Origin: Selaginella moellendorffii
Lineage: Eukaryota > Plantae > Lycopodiophyta
Assembly: GCF_000143415.4 (NCBI RefSeq)
Contig: NW_003314530.1
Coordinates: forward strand, 1 to 15,232
Direction: 5' to 3'
DNA: 15,232 bases
Part shown: positions 1 to 13,774 of the stretch, one piece after another
Layout: each line of letters opens with the position of its first letter
Numbering within the stretch: position 1 is the first letter of the stretch
The notes under the pieces: generated by a model
Told to the model about the DNA's origin: nothing
Databases searched by the model: none
What the model saw: the letters and a program-made list of their open reading frames with translations, nothing else
Made by a program: the position numbers and the translations under genes

Positions 1-650
1 TCAAACCTGATCTTGGTAGAGTTTTCGATCTCATAACCTCCCTCTCGGGCCGCCCTTTTCAAGTCATTAGATTCTGGAGTTCTAGACGAAAACTTCGACC
101 CAAATTTTCCTCCAATCTCCAGAGCCACCCTGCACACCTCGTCATCCGCATTCTCCACAGCAAGCCTATCCAGAAGCTGCACAATTCCAGGTCTCTGTCT
201 CGGCGAGCAAAAACTCGAGGCTGTGATCACAGCAAGGCGAGTCTCCACAGTGAGTGCATGATTCAAAGTCGTGAGCTGGTCCTTGATCCGAGCAGTGATC
301 TCTTTAGTGCGTCGGTTTTGCTTGACAAGCCCTTGTCCAAAAAATGCCTTCAACACACCGGCATCCAAGTTCCCACTCTTGGTCGAGCCAGTAAATCTTT
401 GAATCTTCACATTCGCGGCTGCCAATTCCTTTCCAAGCTCCTCTATGACGACTGATCTCACCCGGGTGATAGGGCCAGACTCACCTGCTGCTTGAAGATC
501 CAGTAACAAGCTCCCCGCATGATCTACACAAGAGACTAGATCTTGCAGCTTGAGTGGTGCATTTTTAAGCTCTTCCCTCACTTGGAGTATGTGTCGCACA
601 AGTTTTATTGCCATATCTACCAAGCCGACCACATTTCCTGCCGTGTCCAT
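1..650 (-). CDS. 5' part of a protein with a putative HeLo-like/MLKL-type four-helix N-terminal domain; continues beyond the left edge
   Basis: Manual translation from ATG 650 gives 216 stop-free codons to the edge: MDTAGNVVGLVDMAIKLVRHILQVREELKNAPLKLQDLVSCVDHAGSLLLDLQAAG...EITARIKDQLTTLNHALTVE...GGYEIENSTKIRF. It is absent from the ORF track, presumably because no stop lies in the window. An amphipathic first helix followed by KNAPxxLxxL resembles HeLo-like/STAND N-terminal domains (by-eye match). Confidence 0.6.
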   Translation of the reverse strand, partial: MDTAGNVVGLVDMAIKLVRHILQVREELKNAPLKLQDLVSCVDHAGSLLLDLQAAGESGPITRVRSVVIEELGKELAAANVKIQRFTGSTKSGNLDAGVLKAFFGQGLVKQNRRTKEITARIKDQLTTLNHALTVETRLAVITASSFCSPRQRPGIVQLLDRLAVENADDEVCRVALEIGGKFGSKFSSRTPESNDLKRAAREGGYEIENSTKIRF

Positions 651-805: not shown

Positions 806-2103
806 ATGGACGTGTTCTACAGCGATCCGTCACCTTGTGCGGCAATGGCTGCGTGCCACTGCGAGCCATTGCGAGCCATTGCCAGTCGATTTGGGCTACA
901 ATGGAGATTTGCACATCGAAAAGGTGCGATCAGAAACAAACAGGGATGGCAGCCAGAGCCAACCGTTCCAGATCGGTGGGTATTATGGCCCATTCTCAGC
1001 AGGCGATTCATGTGCACTGGAGGTGATGTTTTGGAGATCCGGCTAGAGAAGCTATTGCATACGTCCCGCTCCATCGCCGGTTACAGTGCCATCGATCTCA
1101 CCACAGGCGATCAGCTTGTTCTCAAGCTGGACTACGAGGCCGACATGAACCTCGGTGTTGAAGTTTCAGCGTTGGCGTCGCTTTGCAAGCGAGGGATCAA
1201 GTCGCCCAGCTTGCCCGTGCTTGTCAGCGATGGCTGCTTCCGGGCATGGGGAGTTGCTACCGAGCACAGCCAGTTTGGTGACGTGCATGGGCTTGTCACA
1301 AAGCCGCTGGGAGGCATGAAGTTCCATGGGGGTGTCTTGTGCAAGTTGGCGTTTGACATCCTCCTGGGGCTATACCACCTTCACCTGATCGGCTGCCGGC
1401 ACAAGGACGTCCACCCCCGCAACATGATCCTCTTGGGTGGCAACCAGTTCGCATTGATCGACCTCGAGTTTGCTTGGTGCGAGGACGAGGAGAAGATCTC
1501 GGCATTGCAGCTGAACATGTTCACGACGACGAAACCCTCCCTCCGTCGGACTGTCAGGCTCTTGTTTTCCGCTTGGTGGAGCTCTCCCAAGAGCGGCCTA
1601 CTGTGACTATGGAGGCCGCTATCCAGATGCTGGAGGCGGAGAGTGGAACGCTAGGCGACTTCGCAGCCTACGTTTCCAGGCTCGATCGCGATGCTTGGCC
1701 TGATTTCAAACAGTGGCTGCATCGCCTCGGGAAAGCTTGCGGCCTGAGTGATGCACGTATCGAAGATTTGTTGGCAGGACGGGTATCTTCGGCAGAGTTT
1801 GGTCCGCGGCCTGTGGAAGTCGCTCCCAAACGTCCGGTGGAGCAGCCTTGGGACAACAGGCCTGTTGCGATCTGGGTCAAGTTTGTGCAGCAGCTGGGCG
1901 CCTTTGCTTGTGGGGAGGGCGCGTTTTTCCCACTGGAAGGTGTGAAGGCCAAGTGGACGCTAGATGGGGTGGAGGTGGCAGGGCGTGCAATTGGAGCCAG
2001 GGAAAACCTCGAGGAAGTGTTAGCATGGAGTGGGCACAAGGGAACGCCCGATGATCCTTCGGTAATCAGTGGCAGGCCTCGTATGATCGTCGGCACAATC
2101 TAA
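806..2103 (+). pseudogene. Divergent non-RD protein kinase-like gene (FunK1/CK1-like flavour) split by a frameshift near 1500, with an extra C-terminal domain
   Basis: ORF 806-1606 has the beta3 Lys (LVLK), alphaC Glu (VEVSAL), catalytic loop HKDVHPRN and a DFG-equivalent (LIDLEFA). The subdomain IX-like segment (AAEHVH...SDCQALVFRLVEL) is in another frame (ORF 1474-2103). No plausible intron bridges the two frames. The true start is uncertain. Confidence 0.65.
841..890. repeat. Degenerate 10-bp tandem repeat with an inverted copy
   Basis: gcgtgccact/gcgagccatt/gcgagccatt/gccagtcgat at 851-890; ggcaatggct (841-850) is the reverse complement of 874-883. Confidence 0.6.
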
Positions 2104-2440
2104 ATTCTCTAGTGATCTAGAGATGTTCGCTCTTTAAAAAGTAGTTCGCGCTATATCCAACGGCTGGCGCTTGCTTAGCCGCCCGTCAGAAGCCCTAATC
2201 TTGATAGAATATTCGCATTAGGGCTAGAGAATATTCGTTTTTAAAAAAGGGACCATGTAAGAAAAATCAAACGACAAAACGCGGACAATGTATATCTGTA
2301 CAAAAACAAGAACAAACCTTGTTTCCACATTCCTTGTTTTAGGATGATTAGCCCACCGCGATGAGCTAATCATCGTAAAACAAGATGTGGCTCCTTCCCT
2401 TCTCTTTCCTTTGTTTTTCGTCCCTGCTCTCTCTTCTTTC

Positions 2441-5400
2441 TCAATCGTCGTAGGGGCCTTCAAAGTTAACGGGCCTCGTCTTGAGCCAATGCATCATCTC
2501 CGAGTCTGGATAGCCGCGTCGCTGCACGGCATCCAGCATTGGACTCCCAAACAGCCCTCTGTTACTCTTGAACTCCCAAAACTGTGACTTTGGCCACTGC
2601 TTTTGAGGCCAGCGCTCCTGCGCAACAAGAACCAAGTTAGCCACAGAGAAACGAGAGAAACGCATCGAGCGTACCATTCGCGGGAACATTTCTTCTCGAA
2701 ACCTGGAGCCGTACGCACGCCGAGAATCTTGCTGCAAGCCCTTGGCGTAGCAGGACGAGAAATCCGGGAGCACCAGGCAGCCTCTTCGTTGCTGTACAAG
2801 GCTGGCACCAGGATCAGCGCATGTCTGCTTGAACCAGGATATGAGCTGCCCAAGCACGTACTCCTTATTGTACGTCTTCTTCCACTTGTGGCAAGAGGGA
2901 GGATTGACATGCTTGCCAAGATCCAGGGAGCTTATTTCAATCGGAGGGGACTCAAAGGTGCCATACTCCTGCGGTAAAATATGCGTGATGAGACGATCAA
3001 CACAAACCATAGACACGCATACCTCGCACGTAAAGAAGCACTGAGTGTACGCGTACATCTGAACCAGGTCTGCAGCTGCATCATGTCTTGACAACACTGT
3101 CGGCTCCAAACCTCGCAGCGTATCTCTTAGCCTAAAGAAATCGTCAGCAAGAACAACACAAGAAAGAGAAAACGTACCATAAGAGTGACTCCCGGAGGCT
3201 TCCCCCGTCGTCTCTTTCGTCTGGCGTATGCTCTTGAACCTGCCGCTTCAACTCAGCTAATCTATCCGCCGGGATGTGTGGCATCATACAGCTAAGCAGC
3301 TCGTTCACAATCGAATTCTCTGCACTCCACAGCCGCGAAACGAGTTCCTTCTGATCGAGCTTTTTCAAAAGAGGTGGTGCCTCCCGAGGATCCGTGAACA
3401 GTTGCCGCAGGACGTACCTCACCTGAAACCGGCAAAAGAAAACGCCGTCAATAAAAGAAGATCACGAAGAAGAGAAAAAAGAGGAACATTTACTTTGTCA
3501 AGTGTGATGGCAATGTTTTGCAGCCTTTGATTGTAGACACCCTCGGCCTGTAAACAACAGAGGTGGGTTACAAACATCCAAAGTCCCCTTTGATGTGATT
3601 TCAAACCTGGTTCTCGGCGTCGACTCTACCGAGTTCATAAGATAAATCGGCATCCTTTCTCTTCTTTTTAACACTTCTCATGAGCTCGTCAGGCAGTAGT
3701 TGCCGTTCCAGATTCATAAACTCCACCTACAAAAACATGAGTGGAGATCAAAGTTTAAAATTTAAAACATACCAGTCGGGCCGTATATTTTAGCAACCAA
3801 TCCGGCAAGCCGTCCAGAAGACAAGATCCAACACCCGCCTGCCTCATCTCTTCGAGCTCCAACCTTGTCACCGGCCCCTCACAGCAGGCTTCAAGAAGTA
3901 GAACATGCCGGTCCAGTAGACCATGCCGCTCCTTGATAACATCTTGTGAAGCTCCCGCATTAGCAAGATTAAGATAGCTCCCACGACAACACTGGCTTCC
4001 GCACAAACAGATTGAGTTGTTGTACTCCTCTTTGCTCTGTAAGACGACGTGTCAGGCTTGCACAAATCATAAAGAGAAAGAGAGTGAACTTCACCTCCGT
4101 CACAGAATTATAGTCGAAAGTTAGTTCTTCACCATTCTGGATAGGTCGTAGAGCATAGACTCCAATAATGTATCGGCCTTTGACGGCAGTGACCCTGACA
4201 AACCCGTGTTAGCACATAGGACTGATTTAATTGAGTGAAGCTTACTTTGCCTCGCAGTTTGGTCTGCATGAGTGACATATCCGACTTGCAAAATTTGCTT
4301 TGTGCATGGCATCCACGACTACAAGATCGTAGCCAGCAGCATCACCCTATAACCGCATTTGATCAGTAACTGACGCTCAAGAATCAGGGTAAGCACCTTT
4401 GGCCGTTCCAATAGAATGTTGTAGAACTCTGGCAAAGGTTCTTTATCTTTCTTCTGCAAATACCGGCATCCGTCCTGTTTCTCATACCATCTCCAGGCAG
4501 GATACACCTATAATTGATTGACAGAGTTAAGTGGGAATTAAAACAAGTAAACGTGTACCTCCCCAAAGAACTCCACAACAAAGTCGTCCTCCTTAAATCC
4601 ACCGTCCTTGTTACAAACCACCCCGAGGCCCTGCAGTGCAATTAATAAGTATGCCTTAACATGCACGCGCACGGCAGTGAGCATACCTTGCGATAAGCTA
4701 AATACTTCTCCTTTGTACGATTGCGCATGTTAGAGAGAAGCCCTTGGGCAAACTGTTGCATGGACGTATCTTGAGCGTCATCTACGATTCGTTGTATGAC
4801 GGGTTCCAGTGAAAAATCAATCGGCGCTTTTCCTGTACCGGTAAACTGTTTTACCTCCTTGTTTATGGCTTGGAGCAATGTCTGCAAACAAACTGTAAGT
4901 CGCCAAGGACAAGAAACATTCTGAAAGATCATACCTCTTCCATAAACTGCAGTTTCTCTTGAAGTGTCATCGCTGGAATCTTTGGCATAGTATCCAGAAG
5001 AAGATTATGTGTGTACGGGTCTATTCCATAAACCTCCTGCTCCATGACTTCCACCCCCAATTCTCTTCGAGGGTGGTAGTTCTTGATGTCAGGAATGTCT
5101 AGATGGCTGTATTCACCACGCTTCAGCTTTGAAGCCCTTAGCTTCTCCTCATAGTCGTCTGGAACCTCGACTTGCATCTTCCTTTCGACCAAGTCTTTGT
5201 CTATGACTATCCAGTAGTCCTCAATAATCTCATACTTCCTGGTCACCGGTGGCACCATCGCTGCCTTGGTCATGCGCGCACCCCATTCGCGTACATCGCA
5301 TGCATACTCGTCCACCTCGGTGAATTCTTCATCCAGTACGACAGACTTCACTGAACGTCTTAGCTTGTTGAGCTTCTTCGTCACCGTAGTTTTCCGTTTG

Positions 5401-8400
5401 CCTTTCAAGTAACCATTATCCTTTAGGACCTTTATATCGGTGGTCACCTTAACCCGTTTGTAGCCGCTGTGCTGCGTCATGGAATCGATGTCCTGCTCGT
5501 TGCTGTAGCATGGGTCTATGTCCATCGGCTCTGACTCATCCACGTCTTCATCGTCCTTACTTAAGCTACAAGTGCCGATGGAGTTCAAGCTTTTCATCTT
5601 GCGATGGGAATCATCGCTTCCCTGAGTTGCACTGTCGGACACCTCACTGTCGTCGTATACCCAGTTTACTTGAGGAAAACTGTGACTAAGGTCGCCGAAC
5701 TGGTCACAGCCGTTGATATCAACATCTTGAATCGTCGGACAAGCCTCCAAAAACTTCCCGAGAGCATCCGGACTGAGCACCGTGCAATCCTTCAGCAGTA
5801 TCTGCTTCAGGTTGCCCCCACCGTAATTTTGTTGCTGTTTAGTAGGATGATTAGCCAACCAGTGAAAGAAAGAAACTTTCGCATACCTGGACCGAAGACA
5901 AAACAGCATCTGTGCAATGCACTCCGATGGACGTAAAATCGAGGCATTTCACTTTTGGCTTGAACTTCTCAACAGCAGCGCGCCAGGATTTGCAGGTCAT
6001 AGAAATCAATGCCAGCGATTTCAAGTCCCCTTTAAGATGATGGTAGATTCGCATCAGCATCAACTGTCCTAGTGTCTCCCAGCTGTTATTCTGTCCCGCC
6101 TCGTACAAGTGCTCATCCGATGAGTCAAAAACGTCGTTGCGGATCAGACGTCGCTGTCTTGTTCTTCTTCCTGTCGGGAGTTCATCTTCCGACGATTCTA
6201 CATCGTCATTGTAAACCAGACGCCGTTTTCTGGAAGTCTGCTCCTGGCTCAATCCGTTAGACCTGAATAAAGGCCTTCTGTTGGGACGATGATCTTGGTC
6301 ACCTACGAAAGAACAGTTAGGCATTACAGTAAACCATGGGAAGCAAATAAGCGTACCATCTTCGCGTTCGTCACTTGTGTCATTGGAGCTCGAAGGCGAG
6401 GGGTGAGACCTTCCATATCCAATCCAAGAATCTTCGCCGGAGAGCAAAGCTACTGTAGAGCACGTTGAAAGCCTTCTGTTCGACTCTATGAGCTTTGCAC
6501 GAGCATCTAAACCTTCGAACAAAATCGCGGACATCACCTGATTTTTGTAGTGCTTCATAACGTGTTCATGTAGCTGGCCGCTGGTGAAGGCCATGATAGT
6601 CTGCTGGATATTTGTGGTCACGACTTTCCTCACGCGTCGGGCACCATCAAAACTGGAAGTGGTCACCTCTGTCACGTTGAAGTTGCCATCATCCATCTCA
6701 GGCCGCGGGAGTGGCACCCAGAGATCATCACTCTTCCTATAAGCGCTGGTACCCGGTATTAGGAGCTCTCTTCCAACCATTGCTTGCAGTTCAGCAAATG
6801 AGTACGGGCCTCTTTCGCGACCACCTCCATCCTTGTAGAACCAGTCTCCTCTACCAAGATCATGGTTGCATTTAGCCTTGATATCTGCAGAGCATGAAGA
6901 CGGTCTCTGAGCTTTCCAAGAAAACGTTCTTGCTGAAGGTGTGTGCCTTTCAGGTGGTAGTGTCTTAGGACGCGTATCGCTGAAAGATGCCTTCTTCGTA
7001 AGGAAAGAGCTCGGTCTTTCCATGCTTGCTCTCTCCGGAGCAATCTCTTTTCCATGGTCGAAAGCCCTGGTAGCAGTCTTCGCTGGCCTGGTTGCCGAAG
7101 CTGATTTCGTCGTTTCAGCACTTGAATCCGCCTTCTGACTTCTGTCTAGTGCCCACTGTGGCAGCTCAAACTTTGGTCTTTCTGACACCTGGACCTGCCT
7201 CCTGGGATCAACCCCGTAATGCGAACGTTCGCAGAGCAAAGAACCCTCATTCAAAACCACCTTGACGTAGTTCTGACCATCCGGATGAAGCAACTTCCAG
7301 TCTCCTCCCTTGGAAGTCCATCTACCAGGCTTCCACTTCAATGGACTTGGATTGTGGTCGTGATGATGCAAGTCCTCCTCGGTTGACGGCGGAGGAGCAG
7401 GCACCGGCTCGGGTGGCACAACTCTGGAAACCGCATCTAGACACTCCAAATCAGTATCAACGCCGAATCCGAGGTTGTATGAGTCCTTCCACGGATTACT
7501 CAGCTCAGGCGCAGCAGAACCTGCAAAAGCCAATTACGCGTTAGCGAATATCGACCGCAAAAACCATCTTTTCCACAACCTTCGTCTGGTGAGTGTTGTC
7601 GCTGTGCATCCAACGCACCTGGCACAAAACACAAGTCAGTGGCCCGTTAAACGCCTTACGATACTTACTAATTAATAGCACAAAACTTACTCAATACAGA
7701 TTTCAGCTCGTTTCCTTGGTCCGAGGCACGACAGGTCGCAAGTATCCTCTCCACCCTTCCGTCAATGTCCAAGAACTCAAAAGACTCATTTTGGAACTGC
7801 TCGTTTCCATCGATGGTCGATTCCGCCAGTGTAGCATCTTTTGCATTTCTAGTAGCAGCGACAGGATTTACCAGCCTCTGTAAGGCCGACGAACCGTTGT
7901 CCGGAGACTGTGCATGCTCTAGAGTGATCCAGGCGTTTGTCCCGCAGCGCATCACCAGGTGGTCGTCTGGCATGAACTCCCTGGACGCCAGCAGCTTCAA
8001 TGCAGCCAGCTCCATAGGCCCCTGCGTGTCTCCATTCTTGTTGATGTACACCCACCCGTCCTTCACCTCTCCAGGCTCATACGTTTCATCTCGGTCTTCC
8101 TGTTCTTGTCCATCACTTTCGATCTCCATCGCAACATGAGTTCCCGGATCACCTAGAACAGGCTGCAGGGCAGCCACAGGAGGCGGAGGTGTAGAAGATT
8201 CGTGCTCTACGGAAGGAGGCGGCAAATGGTGACTAGAGGAAAGAAAAGCCGATCCTTCATTCGCTTGGAATGCCGGGACCGCCGCTTGTACACTGGTAAA
8301 CCTGCTACTTGAATCCCACTGCCCGCTACTGCTACGATAGTCATCCGAGTGCCATTCCTCCGAGCTTCTGACTTGCCTCCGATCTCTTTCAGCACCTCGA

Positions 8401-9539
8401 ATCCAGTCCCTGCGCTCAAACACTTCCCGATCACACCTGCGATCTCTAGCATCGTAGCTCTCTCTACTCTCGGAGCGATTTCCCCAGTCCCGATGATCCC
8501 TGCTACCGCGTGAAGCACACCAATCACCCCGACGCTCGAAGCCATTCCTAGTACCAAATCTGTGAGGCCCCCTATCGTAAACCGCTGAACGCTCGTACGA
8601 AGAGCTCTTGTACTCTAAGCTCGGCTTCACATCGTTTCTATAGTAGTTATCTTTGCGGATGTTCCCCTGGATCGTCACACACCTCCGGCTGTCATTGTAT
8701 CTCCGGCTTCTCGAGTCATGGTCCGCGTAACCATTTCCATAGCTGCTCGAAGAAGAGATCATAGAGGCCCTCCGAGAACCGATGGTGTGTCTCTCGTCAA
8801 GATCATTGTCTTGACCATAAGCTAAATCGTTCCCGGACTCCGATTGAGCTCCCTGCTTGGTGGGCGATGGATCCCATCGAGTTTTCCTGCCACCCCGCCC
8901 CTTATCTTCCTTGTCTTGATGCAGCGGGAGAGCGTTTTCCAGCTCCCTGTCTGAGCGGGAAAAATGGTTTGACTCGCCCAGGTGAGAATCCATGCCGGAG
9001 CCGCGAGAAAATTCTTCCTGGTGCTCTCTAGCGTCCAGTGAGAGAGTGGGCTCGTCTACTTGGTTGGCATTCTGGAAATTGAGATCCAGGGGAGCGCCCG
9101 GAGATCCAGGGGGTCGATCTGGGCTCGACACCATAGTCACTTCCTCCTCCTCAATTTCATACTGGTGTACCAAATCTCGCGACAAGCTTGGTAGCACTGA
9201 AGAACAAAAGGGAAAGAAAGAAAATTGCAAAAAATTAGTCAATTGAGACACTGGGGAGAAAGAACGCGAGCTTCGTCCTAGGGTTGAGGAGGAGAAATCG
9301 AAGCAAAAAGAAAGAGGGGCTCATGCCAGCTCAACCCGCAATCGACCATGCAGCAAACAATGACGAGAAAATCCCACTCCACAAGCCAGGAATCACAGCT
9401 CAGGCAAGATCACGCTAGGTCTTCCACCCCGCGGGGCATGGACAGACGGGAAAAACCCCAGCCCAGTTCCCTGTGCCAGAATCAGCCACACAAACAAGAA
9501 AGCACGAAATTTGGGCAGCGGAACCTCACCCTCGCCCAT
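2441..9539 (-). CDS. ATXR3: Histone-lysine N-methyltransferase ATXR3/SDG2 (H3K4me3 writer): two GYF domains, F-box-like/LRR region, SET and post-SET
   Basis: Hand-built GT-AG model, exons 9530-9539, 7691-9196, 7580-7618, 6357-7520, 5887-6302, 4935-5834, 4687-4881, 4559-4630, 4397-4507, 4246-4346, 4095-4194, 3773-4036, 3607-3726, 3494-3547, 3178-3422, 3023-3131, 2675-2968, 2441-2617; total 5877 nt, in frame. Motifs: EWGARMTKAAMVPPVTRKYE, QEVYGIDPYTHNLLLD, SET (GLGVVCNK...FVVEFFGEVYPAWRWYEKQDG...ANFASRICHSCRPNCEAK...GEELTFDYNS), post-SET CLCGSQCCRGSYL, C-terminal GSPMLDAV. The first exon and the 39-nt exon are the least certain. Confidence 0.93.
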
Positions 9540-10011
9540 TGCCGTAGCTGCGCGCCGTGCATCGCTGCTGATTGCGCTCCCCCGACCTAAGCGCAGCAGG
9601 AAAAAAGCGCCATAGCCGCGAAGATTACGAGCGCGCGGAGGGATTGCAGAGCTGCCCGACGATCCTGCTGCTTGGCGCTGTGGCTATGGCGGCTCCTCCT
9701 CCGCCTTCCCTCCCCAAAGATCTGTCACACACGATTGATGACGCTGGCGTTGGCCCTAACCCTGTGAAGCTTCAGGGGTTAGGGCTGCGCAGTATAAGCC
9801 TATCGTTAAAAAGAAGAAATAAAACTAAAGGAAAAACTGGAACCTTTTACCAAAGTTTACTGTTATCTACTTGCCAAACGTGGAACTTTTAAATTCGTTG
9901 CCGTACATTTCACCGTAGAGGCTACGGAATCTTGCCCTAACCCTACCTTTGGCGATGGCGCTCAAAGCGAGATGACGCTCGCTGGTTCTTTGCTCCTCCA
10001 GCGGCGGCGCA
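9540..10011. promoter_or_regulatory. Likely bidirectional promoter/5'UTR region between ATXR3 and the CCCH gene, with telo-box-like CCCTAA/TTAGGG motifs
   Basis: Divergent predicted starts at 9539 (-) and 10012 (+). ccctaaccct at 9754 and ~9935, ggttaggg at 9777, AT-rich core at about 9806-9895. Confidence 0.55.
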
Positions 10012-11152
10012 ATGAGCAAGAGGCAGCGCAGTAGAAGCCGCTCCCCTGGACGGCGCCGAAGGGATCGCAGCAGATCGCCCAAGCGATTGAGGTAAGAGTG
10101 GAGCTAGCTCGCCCATCCCAATCGCTTATCTCAGTGTACTTTCATCTTCCAGCCGGTCTCCACCGCCGCGGATCCATGGTAAGAAGCAGAAGATCTGTGT
10201 GGATTACGCCAGGGGGAATTGCTTCAGAGGGAATGAGTGCTGGTTTCTCCACGACGAGTTTGAGGACAGATACCAGCGGAGGAGCTACAGCCACAGTAAG
10301 CGCGACTCGAGCTTCTATCCCAGGGGACGGGATGTGAATGGGAAATCGAGGAGCCGGGAGCTGGACGACGATTACAGGCACAATGGATACTCTCGTAGGG
10401 AACGGGAGGAGAGTCCCAGTCACAGGAGATACTCTAGGCGAGATAGTCCCAGTCCCAGGCCATCGACTGAGCGTGTCGAGGAGCAGCATAGAGTGGTGGA
10501 AACGCATCAAGAGCGTAGAGCGGTGGAAACGAATCAACAGCATGGAGTGGTGGAAGCTTACGACAGAATGGTGGTGGAAACATGCCAAGAAGAGCACGCA
10601 CAAATCGAGACACAGGAGCATCAGGATTCGGCTTTACCAGATCACGCTGGGTGTGAAGTAGCTGCAGTGGCTGTGGCTGCCAGAGATGACACTCGAGATG
10701 ACGCTCGAAATGAAGCTCGTTCAAAGCCACTTCCAGAGGTTGAGCGTGACTTGGAGATGTTTGGAGCGCCGGAGTTTTCTCTCGAGCTACAAAAGACGCA
10801 AAGTCACAGCCCGAGTGATGATCGGAAGAAGATGATGGACAGGGAGATGAGATCCTTGAAGGTGCTGAGGAACGCGATCACAGACTTCGTCAAGGAGTCG
10901 CTCAAGCCGGCTTGGAAGGAAGGCCACCTGAGCAAAGTCGCGTTCAAGACAATCGCGCAAAAGGCCGTGGACAAAGTCATGGGAACGTTGCAAGGTCACG
11001 AAATCCCAAAGGGCCAGGCCAAGATCGAGCAGTTCATGGATTCCTCCCACGCAAAGATCACCAAGCTCGTCAAGGTACCGACACTCTCATTCGTTTCAAT
11101 TCATCCTTGTTCTCTTTTTGTGCAGGGATACTTGGACAAGTATGTGTCGTGA
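10012..11152 (+). CDS. CCCH zinc-finger protein with an RS-rich N-terminus and a FES1/C3H38/C3H55-type (SRI-like) C-terminal helical domain
   Basis: Exons 10012-10091, 10153-11074, 11126-11152 with GT-AG introns. Starts MSKRQRSRSRSPGRRRRDRSRSPKRLS; finger CVDYARGNCFRGNECWFLH (C-x7-C-x5-C-x3-H); C-terminus FVKESLKPAWKEGHLSKVAFKTIAQKAVDKV...KITKLVKGYLDKY. Confidence 0.88.
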
Positions 11153-11345
11153 TGTTTTGACAATGGTTGGAAGCCGGAAGATTGATTTCTCAACAGATTG
11201 TACTATGTAAGTCTATAAGTATCAATAGCTAACATTTAAGGTACGCGCACTGGTTCTTCTACTCTTCTGTGTTCTTCAATTTCTCTATGGTATTTCTTTC
11301 GATCTAACAAAAAAAATCGGTTTTTGATGAGCCAGCTCTAGGTGG

Positions 11346-13309
11346 TCACTCCAGCAAGATATTGGTCATAGGTCCGGGGTTCTCGGGGTGTGCCTCAAAC
11401 GCGCTCCACGCCGCTCGGAGACCACACTGGATATCACTGTGGATCCGAGCGCCGCCAAGCAGCGCTCCCCAGGTGGTATCATCGGGAAGATATGGCATGC
11501 TCTGGATAAGCTCCTCGGCCTGTGGGAGCTGCCCTGCTCGAGCCAACAAATCCACCATGGAGCAGTAGATCTCAAAGTGTGGAGCTACGCATCGATCTTC
11601 CAGCATGTACAAGAAGCACTGGCGGCCTTCTTCGACGAGCCCGACGTGCCAGCAAGCGCTCAGGATGTTCACGCAGGTGGCCTCGTCGGGTGGAATTCCC
11701 AGGAGCTCCATCGGTTTGAGCAGCTCCAGCGCTACCTTGCCATGCCCGTTTCGAGCATACGCGGTCGCCATCTCGGCCCAGGGCTTGACGTCCGGGTGTG
11801 GGATCCTTGCGAGAAGATCCCGGGCTTCGCCCAAATGCCCGCTCTGGGCAAATGCTGCCACCACCGCGGTCCAGGTGATCCAATTGCGCTCCGGCATGGA
11901 TTGGAATGCGTGCTTCGCTTGGGCGACGAGGCCGCTCTGGGCGAATCCGGCTGCGGTGCTCGTCCAGGAGACTACATTCCTCTGGGATATCCGATCGAAG
12001 GCGGTGCTTGCCTCGTCCATCAGCCCCGCCTGGGCAAAGCTCGAGATCATCGCGTTCCAGGAGACTGGGGCATGGAATCGAAGACGGCCTTGGCCGCGAC
12101 GGCGTCTCCGACGAGCCCGTGCACGGTGATCATGGCGTTCCAGGAGATCACATCGAGCTGTGGCGCGCGAGAGATCGCGGCGATGGCGTCGTCGACCTGG
12201 CGAGATTGGGCGTAGGCGGCGATGAGCGCGTTCCAGGAGACGATGTTGCGAGAGGGCATCGAGTGGAAGAAGGATTGGGCGTCGTCGACGCGACCGCTCT
12301 GGGAGAAGACTGTGATCATCGCGTTCCAGGCGATGGAATCCCATTTGGGCATAAGAGAGAACATCTCGACCGCTGGATTCAAATCTCCCGCCGTCGCCAG
12401 GCCTTCGATCATGGCCGTCCAGGACACCACGCTCCTTTCCGCCGCGGAATCGAACATCGCCATCGCATCGTCCACATGCCCCTCTTCCGCGAAACCACGA
12501 ATCATGGCCGTCCACGACACCACATCGTGCTGGGGCATTCTCAAGAACACGCTGCGCGCCCTAGCCACATCCCCGCTCTCGGCATTCGCGACGACGATCA
12601 CAGTCCAGGGGATCACATCGCGCTCGGGCATTCCATCGAAGATCCTCTTGGCCTCGCGATTCTCCCCGCGCTCGACGTGTGCTGTGATCATCGCATTCCA
12701 GGAGACGACGTCGTGCTGCGGCATCCGCCAGAACATCGCGCGCGCGTCGTCAAGATTTCCTCTCCTGGCGTAGCCAGCGACCATCGCGTTCCAGATCACG
12801 ATGTTTTGCTGGGGAATCGAGTCGAATATCGCCCTGGCATCGTGGATCCGGCCGTGGCGAGTGTAGAGCGTGATCATCGTGGTTCCAAGGTACACATCCC
12901 ACTGCGGCATGCTCTTCTTGATCTTCTTGGCCTCCGCCACATCCCCTCTCCGAGCATAGGCAGCCGCCAAGGAATTCCAGGTGACCGCATTGCGCTCGGC
13001 CATGGCATCGAAGATCCGCCGCGCCTCCTCGACCTCGCCATTCTCGACATAGGCCTGGATCATCAGATTCCCGGAGAAGGAATTGGGGCAAGGGATGGAG
13101 TCGTGCACGGATCGCGCGTCGCGGGGGCTGCGGCACTTGCCATACATCTCCACGAGCAGATTGGCGAGGAACAAGCTCTGGACATGGATGCTGCTGCCGC
13201 GGATTCGAGCATGCAATCGCCGCCCGCCACACAGGTCGCGGTTCCTCCCGCATTCGCGGACGAGCTCGCCGAGATTCTTCTCCTCAACTCCAGCAGCATC
13301 GTCTCTCAT
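11346..13309 (-). pseudogene. PLS-class (SS-rich) pentatricopeptide-repeat gene ending in an E1 domain, frameshifted near 12066
   Basis: About 14 tandem 31-aa motifs (xVVSWNAMIxxxAxxGxxxxAxxxFxxMPxx), then P2-L2-S2-E1 (YCSMVDLLARAGQL; TWGALLGGARIH). The frame switches at ATG CCC CA|GTC TCC TGG, about 10 nt short of sibling repeats. The C-terminus PENPGPMTNILLE* has no E2 or DYW domain. Confidence 0.85.
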
Positions 13310-13387
13310 CTGCAGATGCCCGGCTATGGCATCGCATTCTCCGCGCTAGAGGAAAGACAGTTACTTACATTCATCGACTCAGGCTAG

Positions 13388-13774
13388 CTAGAACAAGGGA
13401 GATCTGTGAGGAGTTCCTTTGCGGTGGCTTCTGGGCGATGGAGAGGAGACAAGCACTAGGCTTTTACAAGGCGTGGGTGTGGGTGTGGCGGCCATCTCCG
13501 ACGAGAGCACGGAGTTTGGAGAGGGTGGAACTAGAGTTACTGGTGGGGGATGTTGGTGGCGAGTAGTAGTGGTGGTGGCGGTGGTGGTACTGGGCTCTCG
13601 ATCTCTCACAACTATCTGGAGCTTGGTCTTCTTGAAGCCCAGTATCCGAGGAGGAAGAACTTCTTCGCCAACGCTTTGCTGCCGCCTCTTGAGAAGATTG
13701 ACGGTGGTGGTGGTGGTGGTGGCGGCATTCTTATTCTGGTGGTGGTGGTGGTGGTGATGGTCGCTCGTCGCCAT
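13388..13774 (-). CDS. Low-complexity 128-aa ORF ending in an RKGxPHRSP motif typical of PLATZ transcription-factor C-termini; probably an orphaned last exon
   Basis: Ends SHRKGTPHRSPLF*, with poly-His/poly-Thr and an S/P/T-rich body. The frame stays open upstream to about 13870. No PLATZ zinc domain found upstream in the window. Confidence 0.45.
   Translation of the reverse strand: MATSDHHHHHHHQNKNAATTTTTTVNLLKRRQQSVGEEVLPPRILGFKKTKLQIVVRDREPSTTTATTTTTRHQHPPPVTLVPPSPNSVLSSEMAATPTPTPCKSLVLVSSPSPRSHRKGTPHRSPLF
13553..13760. repeat. (GGT/TGG)n trinucleotide microsatellite tracts encoding poly-Thr and poly-His on the minus strand
   Basis: Runs at about 13561-13590, 13703-13722 and 13737-13760. 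Confidence 0.8.

Follow-up and report, generated by a model that had tools for sequence, protein, structure and literature searches.

The window considered here, that is, the whole stretch of 15,232 nucleotides of Selaginella moellendorffii that was analysed (contig NW_003314530.1), begins with the 5' part of a minus-strand gene, SELMODRAFT_428690. It is fairly probable, in our judgement, that its product of about 336 amino acids (aa) combines an amphipathic four-helix bundle of the HeLo/HELL/MLKL_N/RPW8 class, a linker of variable length with one further helix, and a distantly DUF4384-like sandwich, the effector bundle being held by the tail. Bundles of the HeLo, HELL, MLKL, and RPW8 type act as executors of regulated cell death in animals and seed plants as well as in fungi, and, to our knowledge, the reach and the triggering of this toolkit in early land plants are poorly known. 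The gene, its two-domain architecture, its taxonomic range, and the prediction of its fold were all established in the present analysis.

The gene, its product, and its relatives

The frame read from position 650 to position 1 of the window contains 216 codons without a stop, begins with MDTAGNVVGLVDMAIKLV, and arrives at the window edge with the residues YEIENSTKIRF. ATG 650 is its first in-frame ATG, and an in-frame stop lies 11 codons upstream. Over 214 residues, the frame is 100% identical to P0003 (EFJ08744.1, SELMODRAFT_428690, UniProt D8T3Q6), a hypothetical protein of S. moellendorffii, and it therefore corresponds to the gene SELMODRAFT_428690. Since it is identical to P0003 and related to proteins of another lycophyte (E 6.6e-20) and of a fern transcriptome, it is not a chance frame; its absence from the mechanical list of open reading frames (ORFs) is due to the fact that ORFs running off the source are left out there. 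A sequence-only reading of the same stretch had pointed out this stop-free frame from ATG 650, its absence from the ORF track, and the residues at the edge, all of which translation and database identity confirmed. It had also guessed a non-seed plant, correctly so, given the source organism and the occurrence in the window of a plant-specific ATXR3/SDG2 gene. Its description of the gene as unannotated did not stand, because both GenBank and RefSeq carry SELMODRAFT_428690 and its paralogues, annotated as hypothetical or uncharacterised proteins.

The part of the gene that lies in the window is laid out as follows:

1 to 650, minus strand: gene SELMODRAFT_428690, codons 1 to 216 of about 336, the coding sequence running past the left window edge (open frame, identity to EFJ08744.1, full length from the 99%-identical P0006).
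210 to 650, minus strand: codons 1 to 147, predicted four-helix bundle, MLKL_N/HeLo-like (AlphaFold2 models, VIA-align matches, Atlas neighbours, hydrophobic periodicity).
147 to 209, minus strand: codons 148 to 168, low-confidence linker and then a helix at residues 155 to 168, possibly brace-like (predicted local distance difference test [pLDDT] values, insertions in relatives).
1 to 146, minus strand: codons 169 to 216, start of the DUF4384-like beta-sandwich, with the DDE-C-V-LEI strand and the RAAREGGYE-NSTK-RF motif (AlphaFold2 strands, conserved columns).

A word-indexed search with the frame returned one cluster, made up of S. moellendorffii proteins and represented by P0001 (336 aa), which is 95% identical across all 216 residues. 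The intact protein P0006 (336 aa) shares 99% identity with the window frame, the two differing by 3 residues, and is probably the allele on the other haplotype; P0001 and P0004 (95 to 97% identity) look like a second, tandem copy, as judged from two scaffolds. The old P0003 model is mis-spliced, with 263 aa and about 40 residues skipped. The model of the paralogue P0004 has an 11-residue N-terminal extension, MKGGAYHRFCK, and the matching region here is 651 to 690 of the window (minus strand). In the window copy, ATG 650 is the start, because the upstream ATG, located 34 nucleotides (nt) before it, is shifted by one base relative to the frame.

In the full-length copies P0001, P0004, and P0006 (95 to 99% identical), YEIENSTKIRF is followed by EISVDEDDYFFYVV... 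and the chain ends at 336 to 347 aa. According to AlphaFold2, the C-terminal part of these copies is a beta-sandwich of about 165 aa, with strands running from residue 173 up to the C terminus; the DUF4384 match of these copies lay at E 0.0065 to 0.015. DUF4384 (PF14326) matched weakly in four members of the family (P0001, P0006, P0007, and P0011; E 4.7e-4 to 0.015, 15.8 to 20.6 bits), and the gathering cut-off of 27 bits was reached by no member, the best score being 20.6 bits. We labelled the tail DUF4384-like because the matches are consistent across members yet all under threshold. Structure searches with the tail led to Ig-like sandwiches, in particular RhoGDI (Foldseek E ~1e-3, Z 6.7), filamin (Z 7.3), and Pycsar AGS-C (Z 7.0). 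Between the two domains, the poorly conserved linker is modelled with low confidence (pLDDT below 50 at residues 135 to 151), and its length varies among relatives, with large insertions in P0007, P0011, and P0013.

In an exhaustive phmmer scan against 1.84 billion representatives, no more than eight clusters came up, namely, those of Selaginella, of Diphasiastrum complanatum (KAJ7560339.1, P0007, E 6.6e-20), of Pteridium aquilinum (P0012), of JGI metagenomes (P0008 and P0017), and of four Logan assemblies; a word-indexed search with the family alignment added two further Logan proteins. P0012 is a fragment of a P. aquilinum transcript, and since it comes from a transcriptome, a fern relative is transcribed. 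Both domains are kept in the Diphasiastrum protein and in the Logan and metagenome relatives at 27 to 40% identity. Furthermore, all members that are long enough share a common plan, consisting of a helical head about 150 aa long, a variable linker, a DDE-x-C-x-V-x-LEI strand, the (K/R)RAAREGGYE-x-NSTKVRF motif, which is the most conserved of the whole protein, and the beta domain. In the family alignment, the columns R199, A201, E203, G204, G205, E207, K213, and F216 are near invariant. The family is thus described as very small, known from non-seed land plants only, and duplicated in Selaginella.

The residues at the window edge had been taken by the sequence-only reading for the lead-in to a kinase domain, and an MLKL-like or STAND-type protein with its kinase or NTPase just outside the window would be in keeping with the resemblance of the head and with the kinase-like gene found nearby, though the latter is separate and lies on the opposite strand. 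The full-length copies, however, rule out a kinase lead-in at YEIENSTKIRF, as they continue into the beta-sandwich and end without a kinase, and so does the P0003 model of the window gene itself. Moreover, the two-domain build recurs in the relatives from Diphasiastrum and Logan, and Pfam found no kinase or NTPase in any family member, so that a fusion of this sort is exceedingly improbable. Given the beta-sandwich tail and the lack of a kinase or NTPase, the protein is not MLKL as strictly defined, and it is not the N terminus of a STAND or kinase protein.

The helical head domain

Two template-free AlphaFold2 runs, one on the full-length protein and the other on residues 1 to 170 taken from the window, gave the same helices (3 to 28, 33 to 54, 63 to 91, a short one at 97 to 105, 108 to 147, and 155 to 168), with a pLDDT of about 70 in both runs and a predicted template modelling score of 0.61 for the head alone. 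The hydrophobic periodicity of these helices is conserved across the family, and the helices foreseen from the sequence are therefore borne out by both the models and the periodicity.

The predicted head was compared by VIA-align with 48,161 PDB representative chains, and Foldseek's top 1000 chains were re-aligned in a second pass. After re-alignment, the top match was the executioner domain of human MLKL (6zz1_A), with Z 11.8 and a root-mean-square deviation (rmsd) of 2.7 Å over 119 residues at 22% identity. The top rows also included the N-terminal domain of human MLKL (6ux8_A; Z 11.2, rmsd 2.7 Å, 121 aa, 22% identity), mouse MLKL (4btf_A; Z 10.9, 24% identity), and Arabidopsis MLKL3 (AtMLKL3, 6ka4_A; Z 10.5), and MLKL again came first with the full-length model (2msv, Z 10.6). 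Taken together, the head superposes on the four-helix bundle of human and mouse MLKL with Z 10.1 to 11.8 and an rmsd of 2.3 to 2.7 Å over 100 to 121 residues, at 21 to 24% identity, and the alignment starts at MLKL residue 1. Next after MLKL came the CC-R domain of NRG1.1 (Z 9.7 to 11.5, with 108/109 residues at 11.5) and the coiled-coil (CC) domains of Rx (Z 9.2 to 9.4) and NRC2 (Z 9.8). The Foldseek TM-scores, with own and query length combined, were highest for MLKL (0.54/0.58).

A second line of evidence came from the ESM Atlas, where the nearest neighbours of the head are Ascomycota clusters with PF17111 PigL_N (the former Helo_like_N) or PF17107 SesA. The scores were 0.91 for residues 1 to 160 of P0006 and 0.93 for residues 1 to 155 of P0010, two members that are 27% identical to each other. 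All the best family-bearing Atlas matches were PigL_N/SesA clusters, a likeness of learned features that serves as a lead rather than as an alignment. As for curated profiles, Pfam MLKL_N (PF22215) matched two of the 13 members examined (P0011 with E 4.6e-5 and 23.4 bits, P0009 with E 0.075), and MLKL_N and FRB_dom (E 0.02 to 0.1) were the only N-terminal families to match more than one member. Rx_N (E 0.069, in a fragment) and PUB2_N each matched one member weakly, and RPW8 matched none of the members at E up to 1. In the search of the family profile against the PDB, the second match was the CC domain of NRC4 (E 0.036). The top match of that search, the appended domain of MetRS (E 0.0026), looks like helical noise and was set aside.

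Several results weigh against the assignment of the head to this class. The models rest on 13 to 14 sequences, and their pLDDT of about 70 is moderate; the Foldseek E-values for the head are 0.06 or worse; with the VIA tool, Z values below about 13 are common by chance for helical bundles; and unrelated bundles tie with MLKL, namely, IncA (Z 11.6) and the Sla2 THATCH domain (Z 11.2). At the sequence level, the window ORF had no match to HeLo (PF14479), PigL_N (PF17111), SesA (PF17107), RPW8, or MLKL_N in Pfam at E up to 10, and its direct comparison with Pfam, NCBIfam, and the PDB yielded no usable match; likewise, with E up to 1, none of the 13 members matched PF17111, PF17107, or PF14479. 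The MLKL_N gathering cut-off of 27 bits was not reached in the family, where the best score was 23.4 bits, and neither P0006 nor the window ORF matched that profile; more generally, the family passed no curated profile threshold. Searches of the PDB with the family profile and with P0011 alone, run to an E of 10, brought up no sequence of MLKL. Finally, a sister protein matched EzrA at E 9e-5, probably spuriously, and for this reason E-values of this size are unreliable for these helical sequences and are no proof.

The head could also be a generic helical bundle or coiled coil unrelated to HeLo/MLKL, with a role in oligomerisation, scaffolding, or the sequestering of a partner, and that the protein could be a protease substrate or signalling adaptor rather than an executor that attacks membranes. 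Such a head would be comparable to the N-terminal part of Csx30, which keeps a regulator bound up to the point of its removal by a CHAT protease. In line with this explanation, no profile match rises above threshold, the Foldseek E-values are not significant, IncA, Sla2 THATCH, Cbl 4H, and designed proteins fall within one Z unit of MLKL, and the parallel with DUF4384, Csx30, and TPR-CHAT described below suits a non-lytic regulator equally well. On the other hand, MLKL stands among the best of the 48,161 chains with three representatives drawn from distinct sequence clusters, together with RPW8-type and nucleotide-binding and leucine-rich repeat (NLR) CC bundles, and the MLKL-type matches have a two- to three-fold higher identity than most other helical matches (21 to 24% in the structural alignments of MLKL, compared to 4 to 12%). 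In addition, two divergent members independently reach fungal HeLo-like clusters in the Atlas, and the bundle opens the chain at residue 1, its first helix being conserved and hydrophobic, as in the HeLo, MLKL, and CC executors. With the structural, Atlas, and profile evidence considered together, we think it likely that the head is a true HeLo/MLKL-type bundle and rather unlikely that it is an unrelated one, in which case the adaptor or substrate role would apply.

Residues 1 to 150 are thus probably best read, on the strength of the models, as a HeLo/MLKL-type four-helix domain, to which the structural matches, the Atlas neighbours, and the sub-threshold MLKL_N matches each contribute in a non-decisive way. 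The sequence-only reading had proposed an MLKL-type head with a start resembling fungal HeLo-like N termini. The former proposal agrees with the best structural match in the PDB, the MLKL executioner domain, but Foldseek E-values above 0.05 and Z values of about 11, within the chance range for helical bundles, temper it; the latter is matched by the PigL_N/SesA neighbours of two members in the Atlas, but not by any Pfam profile.

Metagenome homologues, neighbouring genes, and a possible trigger

A metagenome scan with a three-sequence alignment retrieved seven eukaryote-like loci, which have a GC content of 35 to 43%, are interrupted after codon ~255 by an intron of about 350 nt, and are 83 to 92% identical to P0008; the organism is probably a moss, and the loci were compared by exon 1. 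The copy at locus L001 is intact; one frameshift, near codon 165, is common to the copies at L003 to L006, and a different one, near codon 98, occurs at L002. Among these recent paralogues, the ratio of nonsynonymous to synonymous substitution rates (dN/dS) over the first 160 codons is about 1.0 to 1.3, and this ratio, together with the shared frameshifts, indicates that some metagenome copies are decaying, a point that counts against the main reading. We are in the presence of a birth-and-death family, with recent expansion and decay in the metagenome organism.

By extension, the window copy might itself be a decaying duplicate of a lineage-specific family, that is, a pseudogene with no present function. 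The birth-and-death pattern, the tandem and haplotype copies in Selaginella, the frameshifted metagenome paralogues with dN/dS of about 1, and the fact that 216 of about 336 codons are visible in the window would all fit such a state. Nevertheless, the 216 visible codons are open, the frame is only 3 residues away from the intact P0006, and all the family-invariant columns are kept. Moreover, the metagenome dN/dS of about 1 reflects frameshifted copies and is uninformative about the Selaginella gene, and we regard a pseudogene as quite improbable.

On its upstream side, SELMODRAFT_428690 stands head-to-head with SELMODRAFT_428689, and the following features adjoin it in the window:

651 to 844, no strand: spacer of about 195 base pairs between the divergent start codons (coordinates).
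845 to 2103, plus strand: SELMODRAFT_428689 (P0020, 398 aa), exons 845 to 1555 and 1627 to 2100 plus the stop codon (mapping, weak kinase matches).

The short spacer may act as a shared promoter for both divergent genes. In P0020, the catalytic loop reads HKDVHPRN, and DLE (in IDLEFA) replaces DFG. Its matches are all weak and include Pkinase, APH, and Bud32, as well as 199 weak PDB kinase matches over the catalytic loop. Judging from these motifs, P0020 is an atypical or divergent protein-kinase-like protein, which may be either an active kinase or a pseudokinase.

Farther along the window, a large multi-exon gene of the ATXR3/SDG2 histone methyltransferase type occupies 2200 to 13400 (minus strand), with SDG2_C at 2441 to 3109 (E 1.3e-60) and GYF/GYF_ATXR3 domains in the ORFs 5851 to 7533 and 7668 to 9251, as two separate GYF-like matches. 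A plus-strand ORF at 11906 to 13387, in a stretch of 60% GC, had no family match and is probably an antisense artefact.

A possible trigger was suggested by the metagenome contig of locus L001, where the only intact homologue among the metagenome loci (9956 to 10843, plus strand) lies head-to-head with a TPR-CHAT ORF (2858 to 7120, minus strand) at a distance of 2.8 kb. The latter is intron-free, encodes 1420 aa, matches CHAT with E 3.8e-38, and retains the THG and SAC catalytic motifs. On the same contig, a 170-aa ORF at 7142 to 7654 (minus strand) may be the 5' part of the TPR-CHAT gene. As regards the tail, DUF4384 is reported to be often fused to proteases, and one group of Csx30 proteins has a C-terminal DUF4384 domain, Csx30 being cut in its linker by the TPR-CHAT protease Csx29 (bioRxiv 10.1101/2022.08.17.504292). 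DUF4384 also accompanies cyanobacterial orthocaspases (PMC7475262). The neighbouring genes suggest a possible protease-gated death or immune switch. To be set against this suggestion, the TPR-CHAT adjacency was observed in a single contig; at L003, which besides L001 is the one locus whose upstream flank is long, no CHAT gene occurs within 10 kb of the frameshifted copy (9956 to 10840); and no P0020-like kinase was found near the homologues at any of the metagenome loci. No second TPR-CHAT gene was found beside the other metagenome copies, most of which lie on contigs whose upstream flank is shorter than 1.2 kb.

We infer for the Selaginella protein a homology to MLKL/HeLo, an activity on membranes, and a trigger. 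MLKL, HELLP, and RPW8/CC-R domains oligomerise and insert into membranes. By analogy with them, the four-helix head would be the effector, which, once released, would oligomerise and attack membranes, with cell death or an immune response as the outcome. Regulation or recognition would fall to the beta-sandwich tail, which would keep the head inactive or recruit an activator. It is possible to speculate that release occurs when a TPR-CHAT caspase-like protease cuts either the linker or the conserved RAAREGG motif, which is located in a loop, and, equally speculatively, that the adjacent atypical kinase triggers release or adds a further level of control. In its full form, the proposal is that non-seed land plants have retained a death switch gated by a protease and absent from seed plants; in this switch, a TPR-CHAT cut would free an MLKL/HeLo-type bundle, and the atypical kinase is maybe a third component. 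We advance this proposal tentatively, with more doubt than confidence.

Comparison with known systems

We found no published description of a build made of a four-helix head and a beta-sandwich tail, nor, in the literature searched, any study dealing with the CHAT-domain proteins of land plants. In the DUF4384 literature, represented for the most part by titles and abstracts, no paper was found that assigns the domain to a protein of plants or connects it with MLKL or HeLo. If the predicted fold is true, such a bundle would occur in lycophytes, ferns, and probably mosses, tied to neither a pseudokinase nor an NLR. Its tail would be a mostly bacterial-type beta domain that is linked elsewhere to caspase-like proteases, which would amount to a new activation logic for a four-helix-bundle executor.

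A close resemblance is that to MLKL, with which the protein would share an up-down four-helix bundle of equal size followed by a further helix, the predicted bundle superposing on residues 0 to 121 of human MLKL. In MLKL, however, a brace and a (pseudo)kinase follow in the same chain, whereas this family has a beta-sandwich tail; as it lacks a pseudokinase, the protein is not MLKL proper. Plant MLKLs are reported to be conserved across seed plants (bioRxiv 10.1101/681015), and the present family differs from them in that it is found in non-seed plants only. MLKL-type proteins have also been reported among the NLR-associated proteins retrieved by NLRtracker in every plant lineage tested, non-seed plants included (PMC11218826); such a pipeline would be expected to miss a family that, like this one, is profile negative.

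The fungal HELL domains (PF17111 and PF17107) are the nearest language-model neighbours and resemble the head in the style of the N-terminal motif, where a first helix that is hydrophobic and rich in G/A precedes a conserved NAP turn. Different from them, this family has no NACHT or NB-ARC STAND partner and no amyloid motif, and its host is a plant rather than a fungus. The RPW8/CC-R domain of NRG1.1 and the CC domains of the NLRs Rx, NRC2, and NRC4 have the same bundle topology as that predicted here, but in this family no NB-ARC-LRR region follows the bundle.

With the Csx30-Csx29 pair of the Craspase (type III-E CRISPR), the likeness concerns the arrangement as a whole, namely, two domains, a flexible linker, a C-terminal domain of the DUF4384 type, and, at the metagenome locus L001, an adjoining TPR-CHAT gene. 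The differences are the eukaryotic host and the lack of a CRISPR context; the comparison is one of architecture and neighbour gene. Gasdermins are protease-activated pore formers, and the cleavage that frees their N-terminal killer domain offers a parallel limited to the logic of activation. A switch of the kind proposed above could thus be described, by analogy and with considerable reserve, as gasdermin- or Craspase-like logic with an MLKL-like head. The protein is not MLKL proper, not the N terminus of a fungal STAND protein, and not the CC domain of an NLR; it works, if at all, like the bundle that these three have in common.

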